From Camelus ferus (lineage: Eukaryota), in contig NC_045707.1 in the NCBI RefSeq assembly GCF_009834535.1, forward strand, positions 17,112,001 to 17,176,000: a DNA stretch of 64,000 nt, in the 5' to 3' direction. Below are positions 26,068 to 31,820 of this stretch, one piece after another. A model generated the notes under the pieces. The model had not been told where the DNA came from. It did no database searches and saw only the letters and a program-made list of their open reading frames with translations. Both the position numbers and the translations under genes were made by a program. Within the stretch, counting starts at the first letter, position 1. Each line of letters opens with the position of its first letter.

Positions 26068-29000
26068 ATGACCTGTGGATCGTCATGCTTTAGCTCCCGT
26101 AGTGGAGTCTGCAAATCCAGCTCCTGTGGGACGACTCAAAGGTACAGTTCTGGTGGTGCCTTCAGCTGCGTCTCCGCCTGCGGGCCCCGGCCTGGCCACT
26201 GCTGCATCACGGCCGCCCCCTACCGCGGCATCTCCTGCTACCGCGGCCTCACCGGGGGCTCCCGCAGCAGTTCCTGCAGCCGCAACTTCGGGTACCGCTC
26301 AGGGGGCGTGTGTGGANNNNNNNNNNNNNNNNNNNNNNNNNNNNNNNNNNNNNNNNNNNNNNNNNNNNNNNNNNNNNNNNNNNNNNNNNNNNNNNNNNNN
26401 NNNNNNNNNNNNNNNNNNNNNNNNNNNNNNNNNNNNNNNNNNNNNAAGTTTGCTGCCTTCATTGACAAGGTGGGTGTCCTTGATCACACCCTTCCTGAAC
26501 CTTCCCTTCCTGGGTAGGCACTGAAGGGGCAGTTAGGGGCAGGAGAGATGTGGTTCTGGTGAGCTCTCAGCCTGATGGAGGAGATGGACAATGTCTAGGG
26601 CACAGACCAGAGAGGTGTGTGTAGAGCGAGGGCTCCTGGTAGGATAGCACTGTTATTATATACAACCTCTGTCCAGACAAGCAGGGTCTCCAGAAAGAGA
26701 CAAGGACAAGGCTTGGAACTGCCTGTCAGAGGGAGGAGGACACACACACACACAAGAAACACACATAAGAAATAGAAAGAGGACCACAGGGTCATCCTTC
26801 AGAATGATCTTGTTGCCTGGAACTTTCAGCCCATTCTATCTCTTTGTCTCTGATGCTGTCTCTGTCTGTCTGTCTCGCTCACACACACAAACACACATGC
26901 GCGCACACACTCACACACTTACACACTCTCATAGCGAACTGTGAGGCCAGCTGAGGCCTCCTGGGTAATGTTCACTTCAGATAGGAGTGGGCCAGCAGGA
27001 GAGTTAGCCAGGGAAGGTTCCCTAGAGGAAAGCTTCGTCATTTGGGAGGGAATTCTGATCCCTGGGGTGGAGAAGCCAGGCTTTAGAAAGGACTTCTTCA
27101 CTTGATCATGGGACACATGGACTAATATTTGCAGCAATTTCAAATGAGGCCCTGTGTGTATGTTTGGCAGGGGTGGTGGCAGGGAGGAAATGAGGAAAGG
27201 GCTGGTGTGGAGGCTCATCGGGGGAATGGATCCAGGATGCTGGGATGAGAGGTGACCTGATGGCTGTTCCCCTGGGCGGCAGGTGCGCTTCCTGGAGCAG
27301 CAGAACAAACTTCTGGAGACCAAGCTGCAGTTCTACCAGAACCGCGGGTGCTGCCAGAGCAACCTTGAGCCGCTGTTCGAGGGCTACATCCAGACGCTGA
27401 GGCGGGAGGCTGAGTGTGTGGAGGCCGACAGCGGGAGGCTGGCCTCAGAGCTCAACCACATGCAGGAGGTGCTGGAGGGCTACAGGAAGAAGTGAGTTGG
27501 CAGGAAAGGTCAGAAGGGCTGAATGATACGACAACTGGGGAGCTGCTGAGCACACTGGCCTTAGACATTTCTTTCTTCATTAATCCACTTTGTGCTTTTA
27601 TCAGCTTCAAAGGCAGTGACAGGCAGACACATGAAGAGAAGAGAAGCTGAAATATCAGCAAAGAACCTTTCCCCATCGCATTATGAACTTCTCTGGACAC
27701 AGACCATATCTCTGTCCATCCATCCACCCATCCATCCAACCATTCCATAAACCTGTTCTGTGCTAGGGGTACAAAGAAATGACACCACTGCTGTTCCACT
27801 GTTCACACCCACTGGTTCAAGTTACTAATTCCACCCACCCTCCCAGATCTAAGCTCAGGGAATCAGCTTATTGTATTAGAGTGATAACAAAACCAAGATC
27901 TTGAAAATGAATCATGTTTAAGTTAGAGAAATGTACTATTAGGAATGTGGCTATGAGTGATATTTCAGACCTGGGGCGAGGGAGATGGATGAGAGGGACA
28001 TTTTGGGCATCCTGGGGGAGGAATGTGATGGGTCAGTTTGGGGTGGTCTCCCTTCCCTTCCGTTACTTCCAGATCTCTGAGTAATTTCCTTTGTTCCAAA
28101 TCCCCTTCCCTTGTGGAGGTTTGAAGAAGAGGTTGCCCTGAGGAACACAGCAGAGAATGAATTTGTCAGAATCAAGCAGGTGAGTGGGTCTGCCTGTGGG
28201 CTGGCAGTCTGGGGGTCTGGGAGCTCTCAGGCCATCAGCACTCCCTCCTTCAGTTACTAAGCTGACACTTTATTCCCACCCATGGAAGGGCATTTTACTT
28301 TTCACAGCCCAGGAGATCTCCAGGGCAGGAATTCCCTGGCTCACTCTTTACAGAGAAGCCCGGAGAGGTGGAAGGACTCTCCAAAGGCACATACTACATT
28401 TTGCTAGAGTTGATGGGAGGTATCAGTGTCCTGACCCCTGACTTCTGGATTGATACCTATGACTTGCTTTGCAGGACTGGCAATGGGATTGGGGATTTTC
28501 CTGGGTTGGACTCGGGGAGGCGGGGCCCCCTGGGAATCCTCTGCAGTAACTAGGGATTGCCCTGTGTTTGTTTCCCCAGGAGGTTAACAGTGCCTACGTG
28601 CGCAAGGCAGATCTGGAGGCCAACGCCCACAGCCTGGTGGAGGAGATGGGCTTCCTGAAGACCCTGTATGAGGAGGTGAGCACCAGCAGGGAGGACATTA
28701 CGCAGCCCCGTCCCTTGTGTCCCACGCCAGCCTGTGTTCAGAGGAAACAGAAAGCAGGGTCTGCAGGCCTGAGGGCTTTGGAAATGGTGGCTCTGTGTGC
28801 ATATGTGTGTGTGTAAATGGGGAATATGAACTCTCTTCTAATTGGCTCTGGATGGTGTATGTAATGTGAATGGCTGTTGGCCCCACAGGAGATACGAGTC
28901 ATCCAAGCCCACATCTCAGACACCTCCATCATTGTCAAGATGGACAACAGCCGGGACCTAGACATGGACAGCATTGTGGCTGAGATCAAGGCTCAGTATG

Positions 29001-31428
29001 ATGATATTGCCAGCCGCAGCCGGGTTGAGGCTGAGTCCTGGTACCTCAGTAAGGTGAGTGGCCCAGGACACCTGCCTCCTAGACATGGTGGTGGGAAGGA
29101 TTCAAGATATATGTTAGAAAGGCCTCTTTTGTCTGAGGATTCTGATCCTTAAGGATGGTAATTAAAGTGTTGACAGCTCTCAAGTAGGGATGGAAAGGCA
29201 GGGCTGTCGTGTACGGTTGCACAGGCTGAGCACTGAACAACCGGCACATCATCTGAGGCATCCTGAATGGGCAGGACGTCCCATTCTGAGCTTCATGAAC
29301 CTCTCTGCTTCCCCTCAGTATGAGGAGATCAAGGCCACGGTGATCCGGCAAGGGGAGACGCTGCGCCGCACCAAGGAGGAGATCAATGAGCTGAACCGCA
29401 TGATCCAGAGGCTGATGGCCGAGGTGGAGAATGCCAAGTCCCAGGTAGGGGTCATCTCTCCCCAAGACCAGAGGCACTAGGGGCCAGCCCAGGGTCCCAT
29501 GGGCAGTGTGCACCCAAATGTATTTCACCATTCATTCTCCAGTCTTTTTGCATGACCAGAGTCCTTGGTTGTGGTCACTCAGGGAGACCCAGGTGACGAA
29601 GGGGGGAGGCCCTGTTTCTGGGGTGATCCCAGCTGGCTAGGAGACACTGGGCACATGCAGGAAATGAACACAGAGACCCAGGGACCATAACCCACCTTGT
29701 TCTCTTCTGGGCCCCCAGAACTCCAAGCTGGAGGCAGCAGTGACCCAGTCTGAGCAGCAGGGTGAGGCGGCCCTTAAGGATGCCCGCAGCANNNNNNNNN
29801 NNNNNNNNNNNNNNNNNNNNNNNNNNNNNNNNNNNNNNNNNNNNNNNNNNNNNNNNNNNNNNNNNNNNNNNNNNNNNNNNNNNNNNNNNNNNNNNNNNNN
29901 NNNNNNNNNNNNNNNNNNNNNNNNNNNNNNNNNNNNNNNNNNNNNNNNNNNNNNNNNNNTGTGTCCAGTGCCTCAGCCTCTGTTTCTTCTGCTCCCATCT
30001 TGGAACCCTTTCAGGCTCCCTTCCTGCCCTAAGGAGAGGCTAAGGAGCACAGTCTTAGCTGAGGTCCACTGCCTGATTTCCAATAGGCTCCTTGCCTGAT
30101 TTAGTTAGGGAGGATGGTGTGCTGGTGAATGTTTAACACCTGGCTCTCTGAGGAAAAAGAAAAGTCCCTGATTTATAACATTTGCTGATTTCGGTGGTGT
30201 AAATGCTTCTTTCATGGCTGATTTCAAGCTACCACTGTGACTTCATGTAGTGTTGGCTAGAAATGTACAAAACAGGCTTGTGAACTGATGGCAGCTAGTG
30301 CCAGAGCATCATTGGTTGAGGGCAGGATAAAAATGGATCAAACTGAAAGGAAAATAGAAAAAAAGATGGAAAACCTGTGGCCCTAGGTGACTGGATTGTT
30401 CAAGATAGTAGAGCCAGTCAGTAGGGATGGGGGAGGCAACCTGGAGCTGGATTCCTGGGGGCAGGTGGAGAGATTTCTGTGTCCTGCTAGATTTTGGCAG
30501 GTCCTGCTTCCCAGAGGGATCTGGGGGAACCTGCTCCTTGTGTTCTTTTGAGCAGGGTTGGGGAGATTCTGAGCCTCTGGGGGTGCTGGACCCCAGACCA
30601 TCTCCTCTGACCTTCTGGAAGGGACTTGGGTGGCTCCTTCTGTGACTGGGCTTAGAGCTGGTGACCACACAAATTCTGGGATCACTGTCAGGAGCTAATG
30701 CCTGGTCCTAATGCTGACCTTTTCTCTCCCACATCAGGCTGTGTGAAGGCATCAATGCTGTGAACATCAGTGAGTAATTCTGGCCCTGAAGGGGAGTTAG
30801 ACAGTGGGAAGAATGTTTTAGCTCTGCGGGTGGAAAGATCCAGGGGGAAGAGTTCCGTTCATTTCCAGCCGCACAGTTACACAGAGGGAGTTGGCCAACG
30901 GGTCATGAGTGAGCTAATTCCTTACTCCAGACCTGTTAGAGTGTCAGTCTACCTCTCCACATTATAGGAAGCTCTGATTTTCTCCCTATCCAAGCAGACT
31001 TGCCCGTGTTCCAGGTGTCAAACAGTTTTCTGGAGCAAAACAGGTTTTCCATCAGTGCGGTTGTCCCCAAGGAGGTCTTCCTGAAAGTCAGATTAAGATG
31101 GGATTGAGATTGAACCAGAAGATGGACTCCTTTCCGGGGAGGGTGGGAGTCCCGCGGGCGGACCACAGGGAAGCCTACTTTGACTCTCTCCCTGGAGGTG
31201 TGGATGAGCAGGAGCCATCCTCCTGGGTCCTCTTGGCTGGTCGGGAGGGAGTCCTGTGTGGGACCAGCTCTCCGCCCCTACCGATAGTTCTGACGTTGTT
31301 ACTGCTCCTGTGCAGATGTGAGCAGCTCCCGGGGCGGAGTCGTGTGTGGGGACCTCTCAGCCTCCCGTACCTGCGGCAACAGGTCCCGTGGGATGGGAGC
31401 CTGTGGCAGCAGCTGTAAGAAGTGTTAA
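26068..31428 (+). CDS. Additional type II hair keratin (KRT81/83/86 family, KRT86-like tail); 9 exons, 474 aa; open in all visible sequence
   Basis: Exons: 26068-26469, 27283-27491, 28119-28179, 28580-28675, 28889-29053, 29319-29444, 29719-29939 (end inferred, N-masked), 30738-30769, 31316-31428. These sum to 1425 nt = 474 aa + TAA. All visible splice sites are GT-AG. Tail [37 protein letters not shown]. 129 nt of exon 1 and the 3' part of exon 7 with its donor are N. Confidence 0.88.
26317..26445. other. N run (129 nt = 43 codons) in exon 1 of the gene at 26068
   Basis: Directly visible; frame preserved. Confidence 0.97.
29792..29959. other. N run (168 nt) over exon 7 of the gene at 26068
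   Basis: Directly visible. Confidence 0.97.
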
Positions 31429-31814
31429 GCTGGCAGGACTGGCGGAAGCACCCAAGCCCCTAGCCCATCTCACCCTCTTCGCGGATCCTGGCTGGCCTGT
31501 CTGCCCAGCTCTACCTTGTGCAGCCTGGTGGTGGGGTGCAATGGCTTGATCTTCTCCGGACCCATCTTCCCTACTGTTCACTTCTCATTTCTTGTTGTGT
31601 GGGAGGCCCCCTCTTTGTCTCCTGCCTCCCTCAGGTTGAAAAATGCCTTTAGGAGGAGTGAAACATGGATGTATTCTGTTTGAAGATTCTGGACTGCTCA
31701 AGCCCATGAAGAGGACAGCACCCCCGGTCCCCATCGCAACCTTCCTTTCCCTTGCATTCTTGTGCTTTCCTTCCTCTCCCAATGATTCTGTTCCTCCTTG
31801 CTGTCTGTGCTTCA

Positions 31815-31820
31815 AATAAA
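31815..31820 (+). terminator. Polyadenylation signal of the gene at 26068-31428
   Basis: AATAAA about 390 nt after the TAA; context ctgtgcttcaAATAAA resembles the KRT81 3' end. Confidence 0.75.

Follow-up and report, generated by a model that had tools for sequence, protein, structure and literature searches.

Does the apparently intact hair keratin gene between a KRT87-like gene and KRT81 in Camelus ferus represent a new keratin or a known one under misleading names, and is it still a working gene? The preliminary description of this DNA proposed a functional gene and took it to be novel. The first part is probably right, supported by purifying selection, a conserved promoter and RNA-seq contigs. 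The second does not, since the gene is already known as KRT88 in dog and horse (Balmer et al., 2017; PMC5573215) and in mouse, where an ortholog is listed (Ho et al., 2022; PMC8733776), and the 474-aa protein is annotated in three camel species. The reading preferred here, with a probability of roughly 0.8, is that the gene is the Camelus ortholog of KRT88 and is intact, transcribed and selectively constrained. Camel KRT88 is a real and already known gene, and probably a functional one.

Architecture of the Camel Gene

The gene is a type II hair keratin gene of nine exons at positions 26068-31428 of the forward strand in the window, which is the whole 64,000-nt stretch of DNA that was analyzed. 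Its exons are as follows:

26068-26469 (+), exon 1: 402 nt; ATG, Cys-rich head and start of the rod; 26317-26445 masked (43 codons)
27283-27491 (+), exon 2: 209 nt; coil 1A/1B; AG/GT splice sites
28119-28179 (+), exon 3: 61 nt; bears the KRT88 signature VRIKQ
28580-28675 (+), exon 4: 96 nt; bears a 13-residue KRT88 signature
28889-29053 (+), exon 5: 165 nt
29319-29444 (+), exon 6: 126 nt
29719-29939 (+), exon 7: 221 nt as judged from the length of the N run; acceptor visible; 29792-29939 masked, including the donor
30738-30769 (+), exon 8: 32 nt; AG/GT splice sites; equal size in all orthologs mapped
31316-31428 (+), exon 9: 113 nt (110 nt + TAA); short Cys-containing tail ending in CKKC

The frame spans 1425 nt (474 aa and TAA) with no stop in its visible part, and each of the 15 splice sites that can be read is GT or AG, in agreement with the nine canonical exons and open 474-aa frame first reported from the sequence. 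Exons 2-8 (209/61/96/165/126/221/32 nt) have identical sizes in seven orthologs and fit the build of type II keratin genes; the 110-nt coding length of exon 9 is likewise common to the seven mapped orthologs. Exon 4 also encodes the 18-residue peptide that had been put forward as unique to this protein.

Matches to the Pfam Filament domain (PF00038) are colinear with the exons: exon 2 covers domain positions 21-88 (E 1.5e-10), exon 4 112-142, exon 5 143-197 (E 3.4e-14) and exon 6 198-239, with exons 2 and 5 each exceeding the 40-bit cut-off by itself. The 83 visible head residues have no Pfam match on their own, the remaining head being masked, and P0444, the annotated C. ferus protein, carries a precomputed match to PF16208. 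The tail alone has no Pfam match. Going by the keratin family, we infer that camel KRT88 is translated and forms filaments in some epithelial appendage, where this 474-aa type II keratin would assemble with a type I partner into 10-nm intermediate filaments. The specialisation for fibre, nail or pad that was first put forward is a conjecture.

Orthology with KRT88 and the Names in Databases

P0444 (474 aa) is identical to the camel gene at all 381 visible residues, and C. bactrianus and C. dromedarius proteins of 474 aa fall into its 90% identity cluster as well. A quick IQ-TREE run pairs the camel gene with alpaca (99% SH-aLRT) inside a 15-row KRT88 clade (99% SH-aLRT), which is distinct from KRT81/83/86, KRT85 and an Hb5-like group that is taken to be KRT89. 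Members of the KRT88-type clade come from Laurasiatheria and Glires and share the signatures MTCGSSC, VRIKQ, ANAHSL and FLKT plus one 10-residue motif. Among the KRT88-type proteins in the blastp list, tail identity to camel is 72-83%; full-length proteins of this type occur in at least 15 other mammals, and the frame is open in all eight species checked at the DNA level. P0012 belongs to the Hb5-like group and not to KRT88. Two further candidates, from rhino (P0330) and golden mole (P0275), were not taken as orthologs, having only 73-82% and 75-89% identity in the diagnostic exons, respectively. For P0305 and P0407 a genomic record was looked up and none was found.

Gene order in the window is KRT7-like (+), KRT87-like (-), camel KRT88 (+), KRT81 (-) and KRT86 (+), which agrees with the location originally given for the gene. 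The alpaca locus matches this order from KRT88 onward, and the head-to-head arrangement of KRT88 with KRT87 is seen also in pangolin and dolphin. In the type II cluster, dog and horse KRT88 occupy the site of the camel gene, with KRT7/KRT87 on one side and KRT81 on the other, and they share its nine-exon build. The Equus przewalskii member of the KRT88 clade (P0401) has 483 aa, compared with 474 in camel, and exons of 429/209/61/96/165/126/221/32/110 nt; the donkey protein (P0311) is about 82% identical to camel KRT88 over aligned visible residues. Gm5414 may be an older mouse name for Krt88.

For human KRT88P, the homologs in dog and horse are reported with intact reading frames, and horse KRT88 with a length of 483 aa (Balmer et al., 2017; PMC5573215). 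The link from camel to human KRT88P rests on that paper and on the agreement of the listed horse length with P0401, the human sequence itself not having been compared. The human counterpart had been described as non-working, and the literature gives it as the pseudogene KRT88P (PMC5573215). On the preferred reading, KRT88 is an old paralog of the KRT81/83/86 hair keratins, flanked by KRT87 and KRT81 in the type II cluster, that has become a pseudogene in humans and stays intact in many other mammals.

Automated annotation was expected to mislabel the gene, and it has done so. The Camelus models all have the length of camel KRT88, 474 aa, and fall with P0444 into one 90% identity cluster, but are named Hb6 (C. 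ferus, XP_006172579.2), Hb3 isoform X1 (C. bactrianus, XP_045379548.2), Hb6-like (C. dromedarius, XP_031318373.1) and Hb1-like (C. ferus, GenBank EPY90177.1), names that imply KRT86, KRT83 or KRT81, which are other genes in the tree. A published account of the camel gene as KRT88 was looked for and not found, and a literature search on camel hair follicle keratins returned no papers. With the gene family, the KRT88 orthology group and the camel gene model already in the literature and in RefSeq, the locus has little discovery value. Misleading Hb1, Hb3 and Hb6 names and chimeric isoforms affect camel, alpaca and many other RefSeq entries, and naming the gene KRT88 would clean up camelid fibre genetics and proteomics.

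Promoter and Transcription

Upstream of the ATG, the TATA box and the LEF1- and HOX13-type motifs reported earlier were all located, as was the AATAAA downstream of the last coding exon:

25832-25839 (+), LEF1/TCF-type motif CTTCAAAG; camel and alpaca only
25854-25864 (+), 11-nt promoter block GATTTTCCAAA; invariant in eight species including rabbit
25913-25935 (+), promoter block with CCCATAAAGG (HOX13-type core); conserved in eight species
25985-25991 (+), TATA box TATAAAA; 77-83 nt upstream of the ATG; invariant in eight species
31429-31820 (+), 3′ UTR; closes with AATAAA at 31815-31820

The proximal promoter is conserved as far as rabbit, and its TATA box and two upstream blocks are invariant over that range. 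Within the block at 25913-25935, TTCCCCAAGC is invariant in the eight species and is followed by one variable base and then by CATAAAGGTGAC, again invariant. The LEF1-type site reads CTTCAG.. (CTTCAGAG or CTTCAGTG) or has diverged in the six other species; because the motif is confined to camel and alpaca, it is not a conserved element.

Camel KRT88 is present in RNA-seq contigs. RNA runs of 97-990 Mb, too small for coverage from genomic DNA, contain 0.72-0.93 of the words of exon 9 and the 3′ UTR. The same runs contain 0.09-0.38 of the words of 26470-31820, for which exons alone would give 0.20 and DNA-like runs give 0.92. These word shares suggest that the transcript is spliced. The sample labels are odd or uninformative (reproductive system, liver, 'mammal metagenome'). 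If these sources, the reproductive tract among them, reflect real expression, the site of action of KRT88 may lie outside the hair shaft.

Selection and the Loss of Cysteines

Purifying constraint on KRT88 is real, though about half as strong as in KRT81 and KRT86. Omega is 0.185 for the KRT88 clade, with 2dlnL = 367 in a likelihood-ratio test against omega = 1. Between camel and alpaca, dN/dS is 0.30 (25 nonsynonymous changes over 885 sites, 23 synonymous changes over 258 sites; p = 7e-5 by Fisher's test), compared with 0.14 for KRT81 and 0.13 for KRT86.

KRT88 has much in common with the hair cortex type II keratins KRT81, KRT86 and KRT83, including equal exon sizes, a visible rod about 82-84% identical and a Cys-rich head and tail. 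In exons 2 and 6, protein identity to KRT81/KRT86 reaches 94-95%, with 31-mers shared elsewhere in the window (35 of them from exon 2). KRT88 differs from those genes in standing apart as its own clade, in its much shorter tail and in keeping only 13 of the 20 Cys positions conserved in KRT81/83/85/86, seven being lost in camel; its protein evolves about twice as fast as KRT81/KRT86. In all, 20 cysteines remain among the 381 visible residues, and the head and tail are still Cys-rich. In the rod and at the tail junction, the residues that replace lost cysteines differ among camelids, pigs, ruminants, hippo, horse and rhino, whereas pangolin and Glires retain these cysteines. Exon 1 of the camel gene has a 27-nt in-frame deletion in the visible head relative to alpaca (429 nt) and the other orthologs, giving 402 nt; the nine missing residues include a conserved Cys, and because of this deletion the camel protein has 474 and not 483 aa. 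The otherwise conserved KKYEEE reads KKFEEE in camelids.

Because of the 13 retained cysteines and the short tail, camel KRT88 is probably less cross-linked by disulfides than the main cortex keratins are. One could go further and propose that ungulate KRT88, still open, constrained and transcribed, is shifting from a hard, disulfide-linked toward a soft-type keratin, a tentative idea that we regard as rather unlikely. KRT88 is a conserved keratin, and its recurrent Cys loss is a small natural experiment on cross-linking in hard keratins.

The same features could be read as decay, with camel KRT88 open and transcribed yet unneeded, its product unimportant, and the gene drifting toward the pseudogene state of humans and dolphins. 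An omega roughly twice that of KRT81/KRT86, lineage-specific replacement of cysteines, the camel head deletion and the camelid KKFEEE would all suit such a course. So would the independent losses in human, known from the literature, and in the river dolphin Pontoporia, a member of a nearly hairless lineage whose copy has a frameshift in exon 6, although the dolphin loss also counts in favour of the preferred reading. Expression is also low in adult dog skin (3.1x; PMC5573215) and absent in 4-week mouse ear (PMC12941220). However, omega stays far below 1 for the clade as a whole and for the camel-alpaca pair, the frame has stayed open in every species checked by DNA and in the full-length proteins of some 15 species, and the promoter blocks are invariant as far as rabbit; stops would be expected after tens of millions of years without selection. 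Decay is on balance improbable, and a constrained, intact KRT88 accounts better for these data.

Frame across the Masked Stretches

About 280 coding nucleotides had been reported as masked, and the count is 277 (129 + 148 nt), or 93 of the 474 codons. The exon 7 donor is unreadable as well, so a stop, frameshift or misjoin could in principle hide in the N runs and leave this copy not intact. This is very improbable. At 43 and 50 codons the runs match the orthologs exactly in length, and both blocks are gap-free in the codon alignment with seven orthologs from other species; exon 7 is 221 nt in seven of seven orthologs. In addition, the annotated proteins of the three Camelus species agree with the gene in total length and in how residues are numbered on either flank of each block. 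Across the window's hair keratin genes, N runs recur at two conserved places (the end of exon 1 and exon 7), a pattern that resembles deliberate masking and not assembly gaps.

Since the N runs are as long as the corresponding stretches of seven orthologs, the frame of camel KRT88 is very probably continuous through them, a judgment from lengths and residue numbering. The positions of the helix initiation and termination motifs at the rod ends fall inside the masked 26317-26445 and 29792-29939; all that can be read at these rod ends is KFAAFIDK, where exon 1 ends.

The 3′ End of the Gene

That exons 1-7 might be joined either to their own exons 8-9 or to downstream ones (an orphan cassette at 36.2-40.1 kb or KRT86) is brought to mind by the alpaca RefSeq isoforms X1 and X3, in which KRT88 exons 1-7 are followed by KRT86 exons from some 33 kb downstream, and by an exon-6-like fragment at 36213-36332, but it has next to no chance of being right, as chimeric keratin models are a known annotation artefact (PMC5573215), the orphan cassette is closer to epithelial than to hair keratins, exons 8 and 9 of the gene itself keep their size and sequence, and the stop its position, across eight species, and it is its own exon 9 and UTR that the RNA runs contain. 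No 31-mer of the camel KRT88 3′ UTR recurs elsewhere in the window, and the UTR aligns over its whole length to that of pangolin, at 73%.

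Structure and Reading Frame of KRT88

Camel KRT88 has nine exons on the forward strand, assembled by script from a reading of positions 25600-32200. The joined frame of 1425 nt comprises 474 codons and a TAA, with no visible stop. All visible acceptors are AG and all visible donors are GT, the exon 7 donor lying inside an N run, and the translations of exons 2, 4, 5, and 6 match the Pfam Filament profile at colinear positions. Exon assembly and motif positions thus bear out the nine-exon, 474-aa model with TATA box, motifs, and AATAAA of the preliminary description.

Features of the window in and around KRT88 (neighboring genes placed by tblastn of the KRT88 model against the window)
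1784-8288, +, KRT7-like gene
15876-21551, -, KRT87-like hair keratin, frameshifted in exon 1
25832-25839, +, LEF1-type motif CTTCAAAG
inside 25913-25935, +, HOX13-type motif CCCATAAAGG
25985-25991, +, TATA box TATAAAA upstream of KRT88
26068-31428, +, KRT88, between the KRT87-like and KRT81-like genes
26068-26469, +, exon 1, 402 nt
27283-27491, +, exon 2, 209 nt
28119-28179, +, exon 3, 61 nt
28580-28675, +, exon 4, 96 nt
28889-29053, +, exon 5, 165 nt
29319-29444, +, exon 6, 126 nt
29719-29939, +, exon 7, 221 nt, donor hidden in N run
30738-30769, +, exon 8, 32 nt
31316-31428, +, exon 9, 113 nt
31815-31820, +, AATAAA at the KRT88 3′ end
36213-36332, +, lone exon-6-like piece between KRT88 and the KRT81-like gene
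46750-50536, -, KRT81-like gene
58938-62408, +, KRT86-like gene, from 58938

Genomic loci of orthologs were fetched and their exons mapped exactly in pangolin (L001), hippo (L005), warthog (L006), yak (L007), Przewalski horse (L008), alpaca (L009), and rabbit (L010); the frame is open and exon sizes are equal in all seven. Over the 391 codon columns unmasked in camel, NG86 dN/dS values for species pairs lie between 0.19 and 0.45, and the GY+F3X4 codon model gives omega = 0.185, while fixing omega at 1 costs 183.7 log-likelihood units (2dlnL = 367). Between camel and alpaca, dN is 0.029 and dS 0.095 (omega = 0.30), with 25 changes at 885 nonsynonymous sites versus 23 at 258 synonymous sites (Fisher p = 7e-5); the neighboring KRT81 and KRT86 have camel-alpaca omega values of 0.14 and 0.13. 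KRT88 is under purifying selection, about half as strong as in KRT81 and KRT86, and it is unlikely that the camel gene is undergoing decay.

At the protein level, exons 2 (27283-27491) and 6 (29319-29444) of KRT88 resemble KRT81 and KRT86 (94-95% identity) far more closely than the remaining gene does, and they have 35 and 29 exact 31-mers, respectively, in common with other parts of the window. This similarity may reflect local gene conversion, which would lower dS there too.

The window contains six N runs. Those within hair keratin genes sit either at the exon 1 end or within exon 7, a placement better explained by deliberate masking of conserved sequence than by gaps in the assembly. In KRT88 one run hides 43 codons in exon 1, and the other hides 148 nt in exon 7 together with 20 nt of intron. 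Frame continuity was assessed from lengths only, with the masked letters left unread. Both blocks are gap-free in the codon alignment with seven orthologs of other species, exon 7 being 221 nt in 7/7; the 429-nt alpaca exon 1 equals the 402 nt of camel plus a 27-nt deletion visible in the camel head; and the annotated Camelus proteins, at 474 aa, match the residue numbering of camel KRT88 on either side of each block. A stop or frameshift in these parts had been the concern of the preliminary description, and the three length tests agree in predicting a frame continuous across the N runs. It is very improbable that the masked letters of this copy conceal a lesion.

Identity, Orthology, and Name

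Protein identity was established by a search seeded with KRT88 exon 5, followed by three further searches. P0444, a 474-aa Camelus ferus protein named 'keratin, type II cuticular Hb6', is 100% identical over the visible residues of the head (1-83), rod (127-377), and tail (428-474), which identifies the window as Camelus DNA. It clusters with 474-aa proteins of C. ferus, C. bactrianus, and C. dromedarius under the names Hb6, Hb3 isoform X1, Hb6-like, and Hb1-like, the kind of mislabelling that had been predicted for automated annotation. The KRT88 signatures (MTCGSSC start, VRIKQ, ANAHSL, FLKT, KYEEIK, and a short tail) are also found in proteins of alpaca, hippo, pig, warthog, several ruminants, horse, donkey, white rhino, pangolins, rabbit, hare, pika, and jerboa.

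A maximum-likelihood tree built from 45 type II hair keratins pairs camel KRT88 with alpaca (99% SH-aLRT) and places both within a KRT88 clade of 15 rows (99% support), apart from KRT81/83/86, KRT85, and a group labelled Hb5-like, which is taken to be KRT89. Because this clade includes both Laurasiatheria and Glires, the paralog dates back at least to Boreoeutheria. In a curation of the keratin genes of dog and horse, the homologs of human KRT88P are reported to have intact reading frames, with horse KRT88 listed at nine exons and 483 aa under a low-reliability flag (Balmer et al., 2017; PMC5573215); P0401, which represents Equus przewalskii in the clade, likewise has nine exons and 483 aa. 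A mouse KRT88 ortholog is also listed (Ho et al., 2022; PMC8733776). Given clade membership with P0401, which matches the listed horse gene, and the mouse ortholog, the camel gene is KRT88; its tie to human KRT88P rests on the literature. The interpretation of an intact gene with a dead human counterpart (as the literature has it) and mislabelled annotation therefore stands, but the gene is not a novel one: catalogues already list it for dog, horse, and mouse, and three camel species have an annotated copy.

In two alpaca RefSeq isoforms, X1 (549 aa) and X3 (506 aa), exons 1-7 of KRT88 are joined to exons of KRT86 that lie some 33 kb downstream (L009 3001-41999); X5 (483 aa) has the canonical nine-exon form. 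The near-identity of keratin exons has probably made chimeras of the X1 and X3 models; genuine alternative 3′ halves for KRT88 are scarcely credible.

Promoter and Transcription

The 330 nt upstream of the KRT88 ATG were aligned across eight species. The TATA box, the 11-nt block GATTTTCCAAA, and the block TTCCCCAAGC.CATAAAGGTGAC are invariant as far as rabbit, which supports a putative conserved working promoter. The LEF1-type CTTCAAAG at 25832-25839 occurs among these species in camel and alpaca only; the other species differ at the site, mostly by one base (CTTCAGAG), and read CTTCAG.. or have diverged. Within the promoter argument of the preliminary description, the LEF1 part is weak because the motif is restricted to the two camelids.

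Runs labelled or guessed as RNA, of 97-990 Mb each, contain 0.72-0.93 of the words sampled from KRT88 exon 9 and the 3′ UTR, and none of the 31-mers of this segment recurs elsewhere in the window. Since the runs are too small to cover a mammalian genome, these words derive from transcripts. Over 26470-31820, the same kind of run contains 0.09-0.38 of words, several at 0.22-0.27; the expected share is 0.20 for exons only and 0.093 for exon 9 and UTR alone, and DNA-like runs reach 0.92. Read indirectly from these shares, the pattern fits spliced KRT88 mRNA.

Cysteine Loss and Protein Features

At the 20 conserved cysteine positions of KRT81/83/85/86 outside the masked parts, camel KRT88 retains 13, other ungulates 8-13, pangolin 18, and Glires 16. 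Rabbit, pika, jerboa, and pangolin KRT88 retain most conserved hard-keratin cysteines. Replacements across lineages are S, G, N, or R at camel position 228, S, R, or F at 352, and S, Y, G, or R at 377. As the replacing residues vary by ungulate lineage, the losses are repeated and independent, a small evolutionary curiosity. The KRT88 tail is far shorter than that of KRT81, camel KRT88 alone is missing nine residues of the head, one of them a conserved Cys, and camelids have KKFEEE in place of KKYEEE. By family membership, the product would form intermediate filaments together with a type I keratin partner, and its lower cysteine content and short tail would make it less cross-linked than cortex keratins.

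Cetaceans have lost hair-type keratins. The river dolphin Pontoporia blainvillei fits this loss, as KRT88 exon 6 (L004 5728-5847) is frameshifted by 3-nt and 1-nt deletions; exon 1 was not found on the 7.5-kb contig. The L004 record is nonetheless annotated as a 317-aa protein.

Neighboring Keratin Genes

KRT88 lies between the KRT87-like and KRT81-like genes, as the preliminary description had placed it, and gene order from KRT88 onward is identical in alpaca (L009). The KRT87-like gene adjoins KRT88 head to head, and the start of intron 1 is nearly identical in the two. Its frame switches within exon 1, with the start MSCLSS... in one frame and FSSLSVCGG...KFAAFIDK in another, which fits a pseudogene like dog and horse KRT87P.

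Downstream of KRT88, an orphan exon-6-like stretch (36213-36332, +, on to about 40.1 kb) is closer to epithelial-type than to hair keratins; the alpaca annotation gives its counterpart (L009 13193-16839) a 204-aa Filament product of its own. KRT81 and KRT86 stand head to head, with equal exon sizes and equal tblastn identities for exons 2-6, and in the tree the camel proteins named Hb1, Hb3, and Hb6 cluster by species. This similarity and species-wise grouping point to probable concerted evolution.
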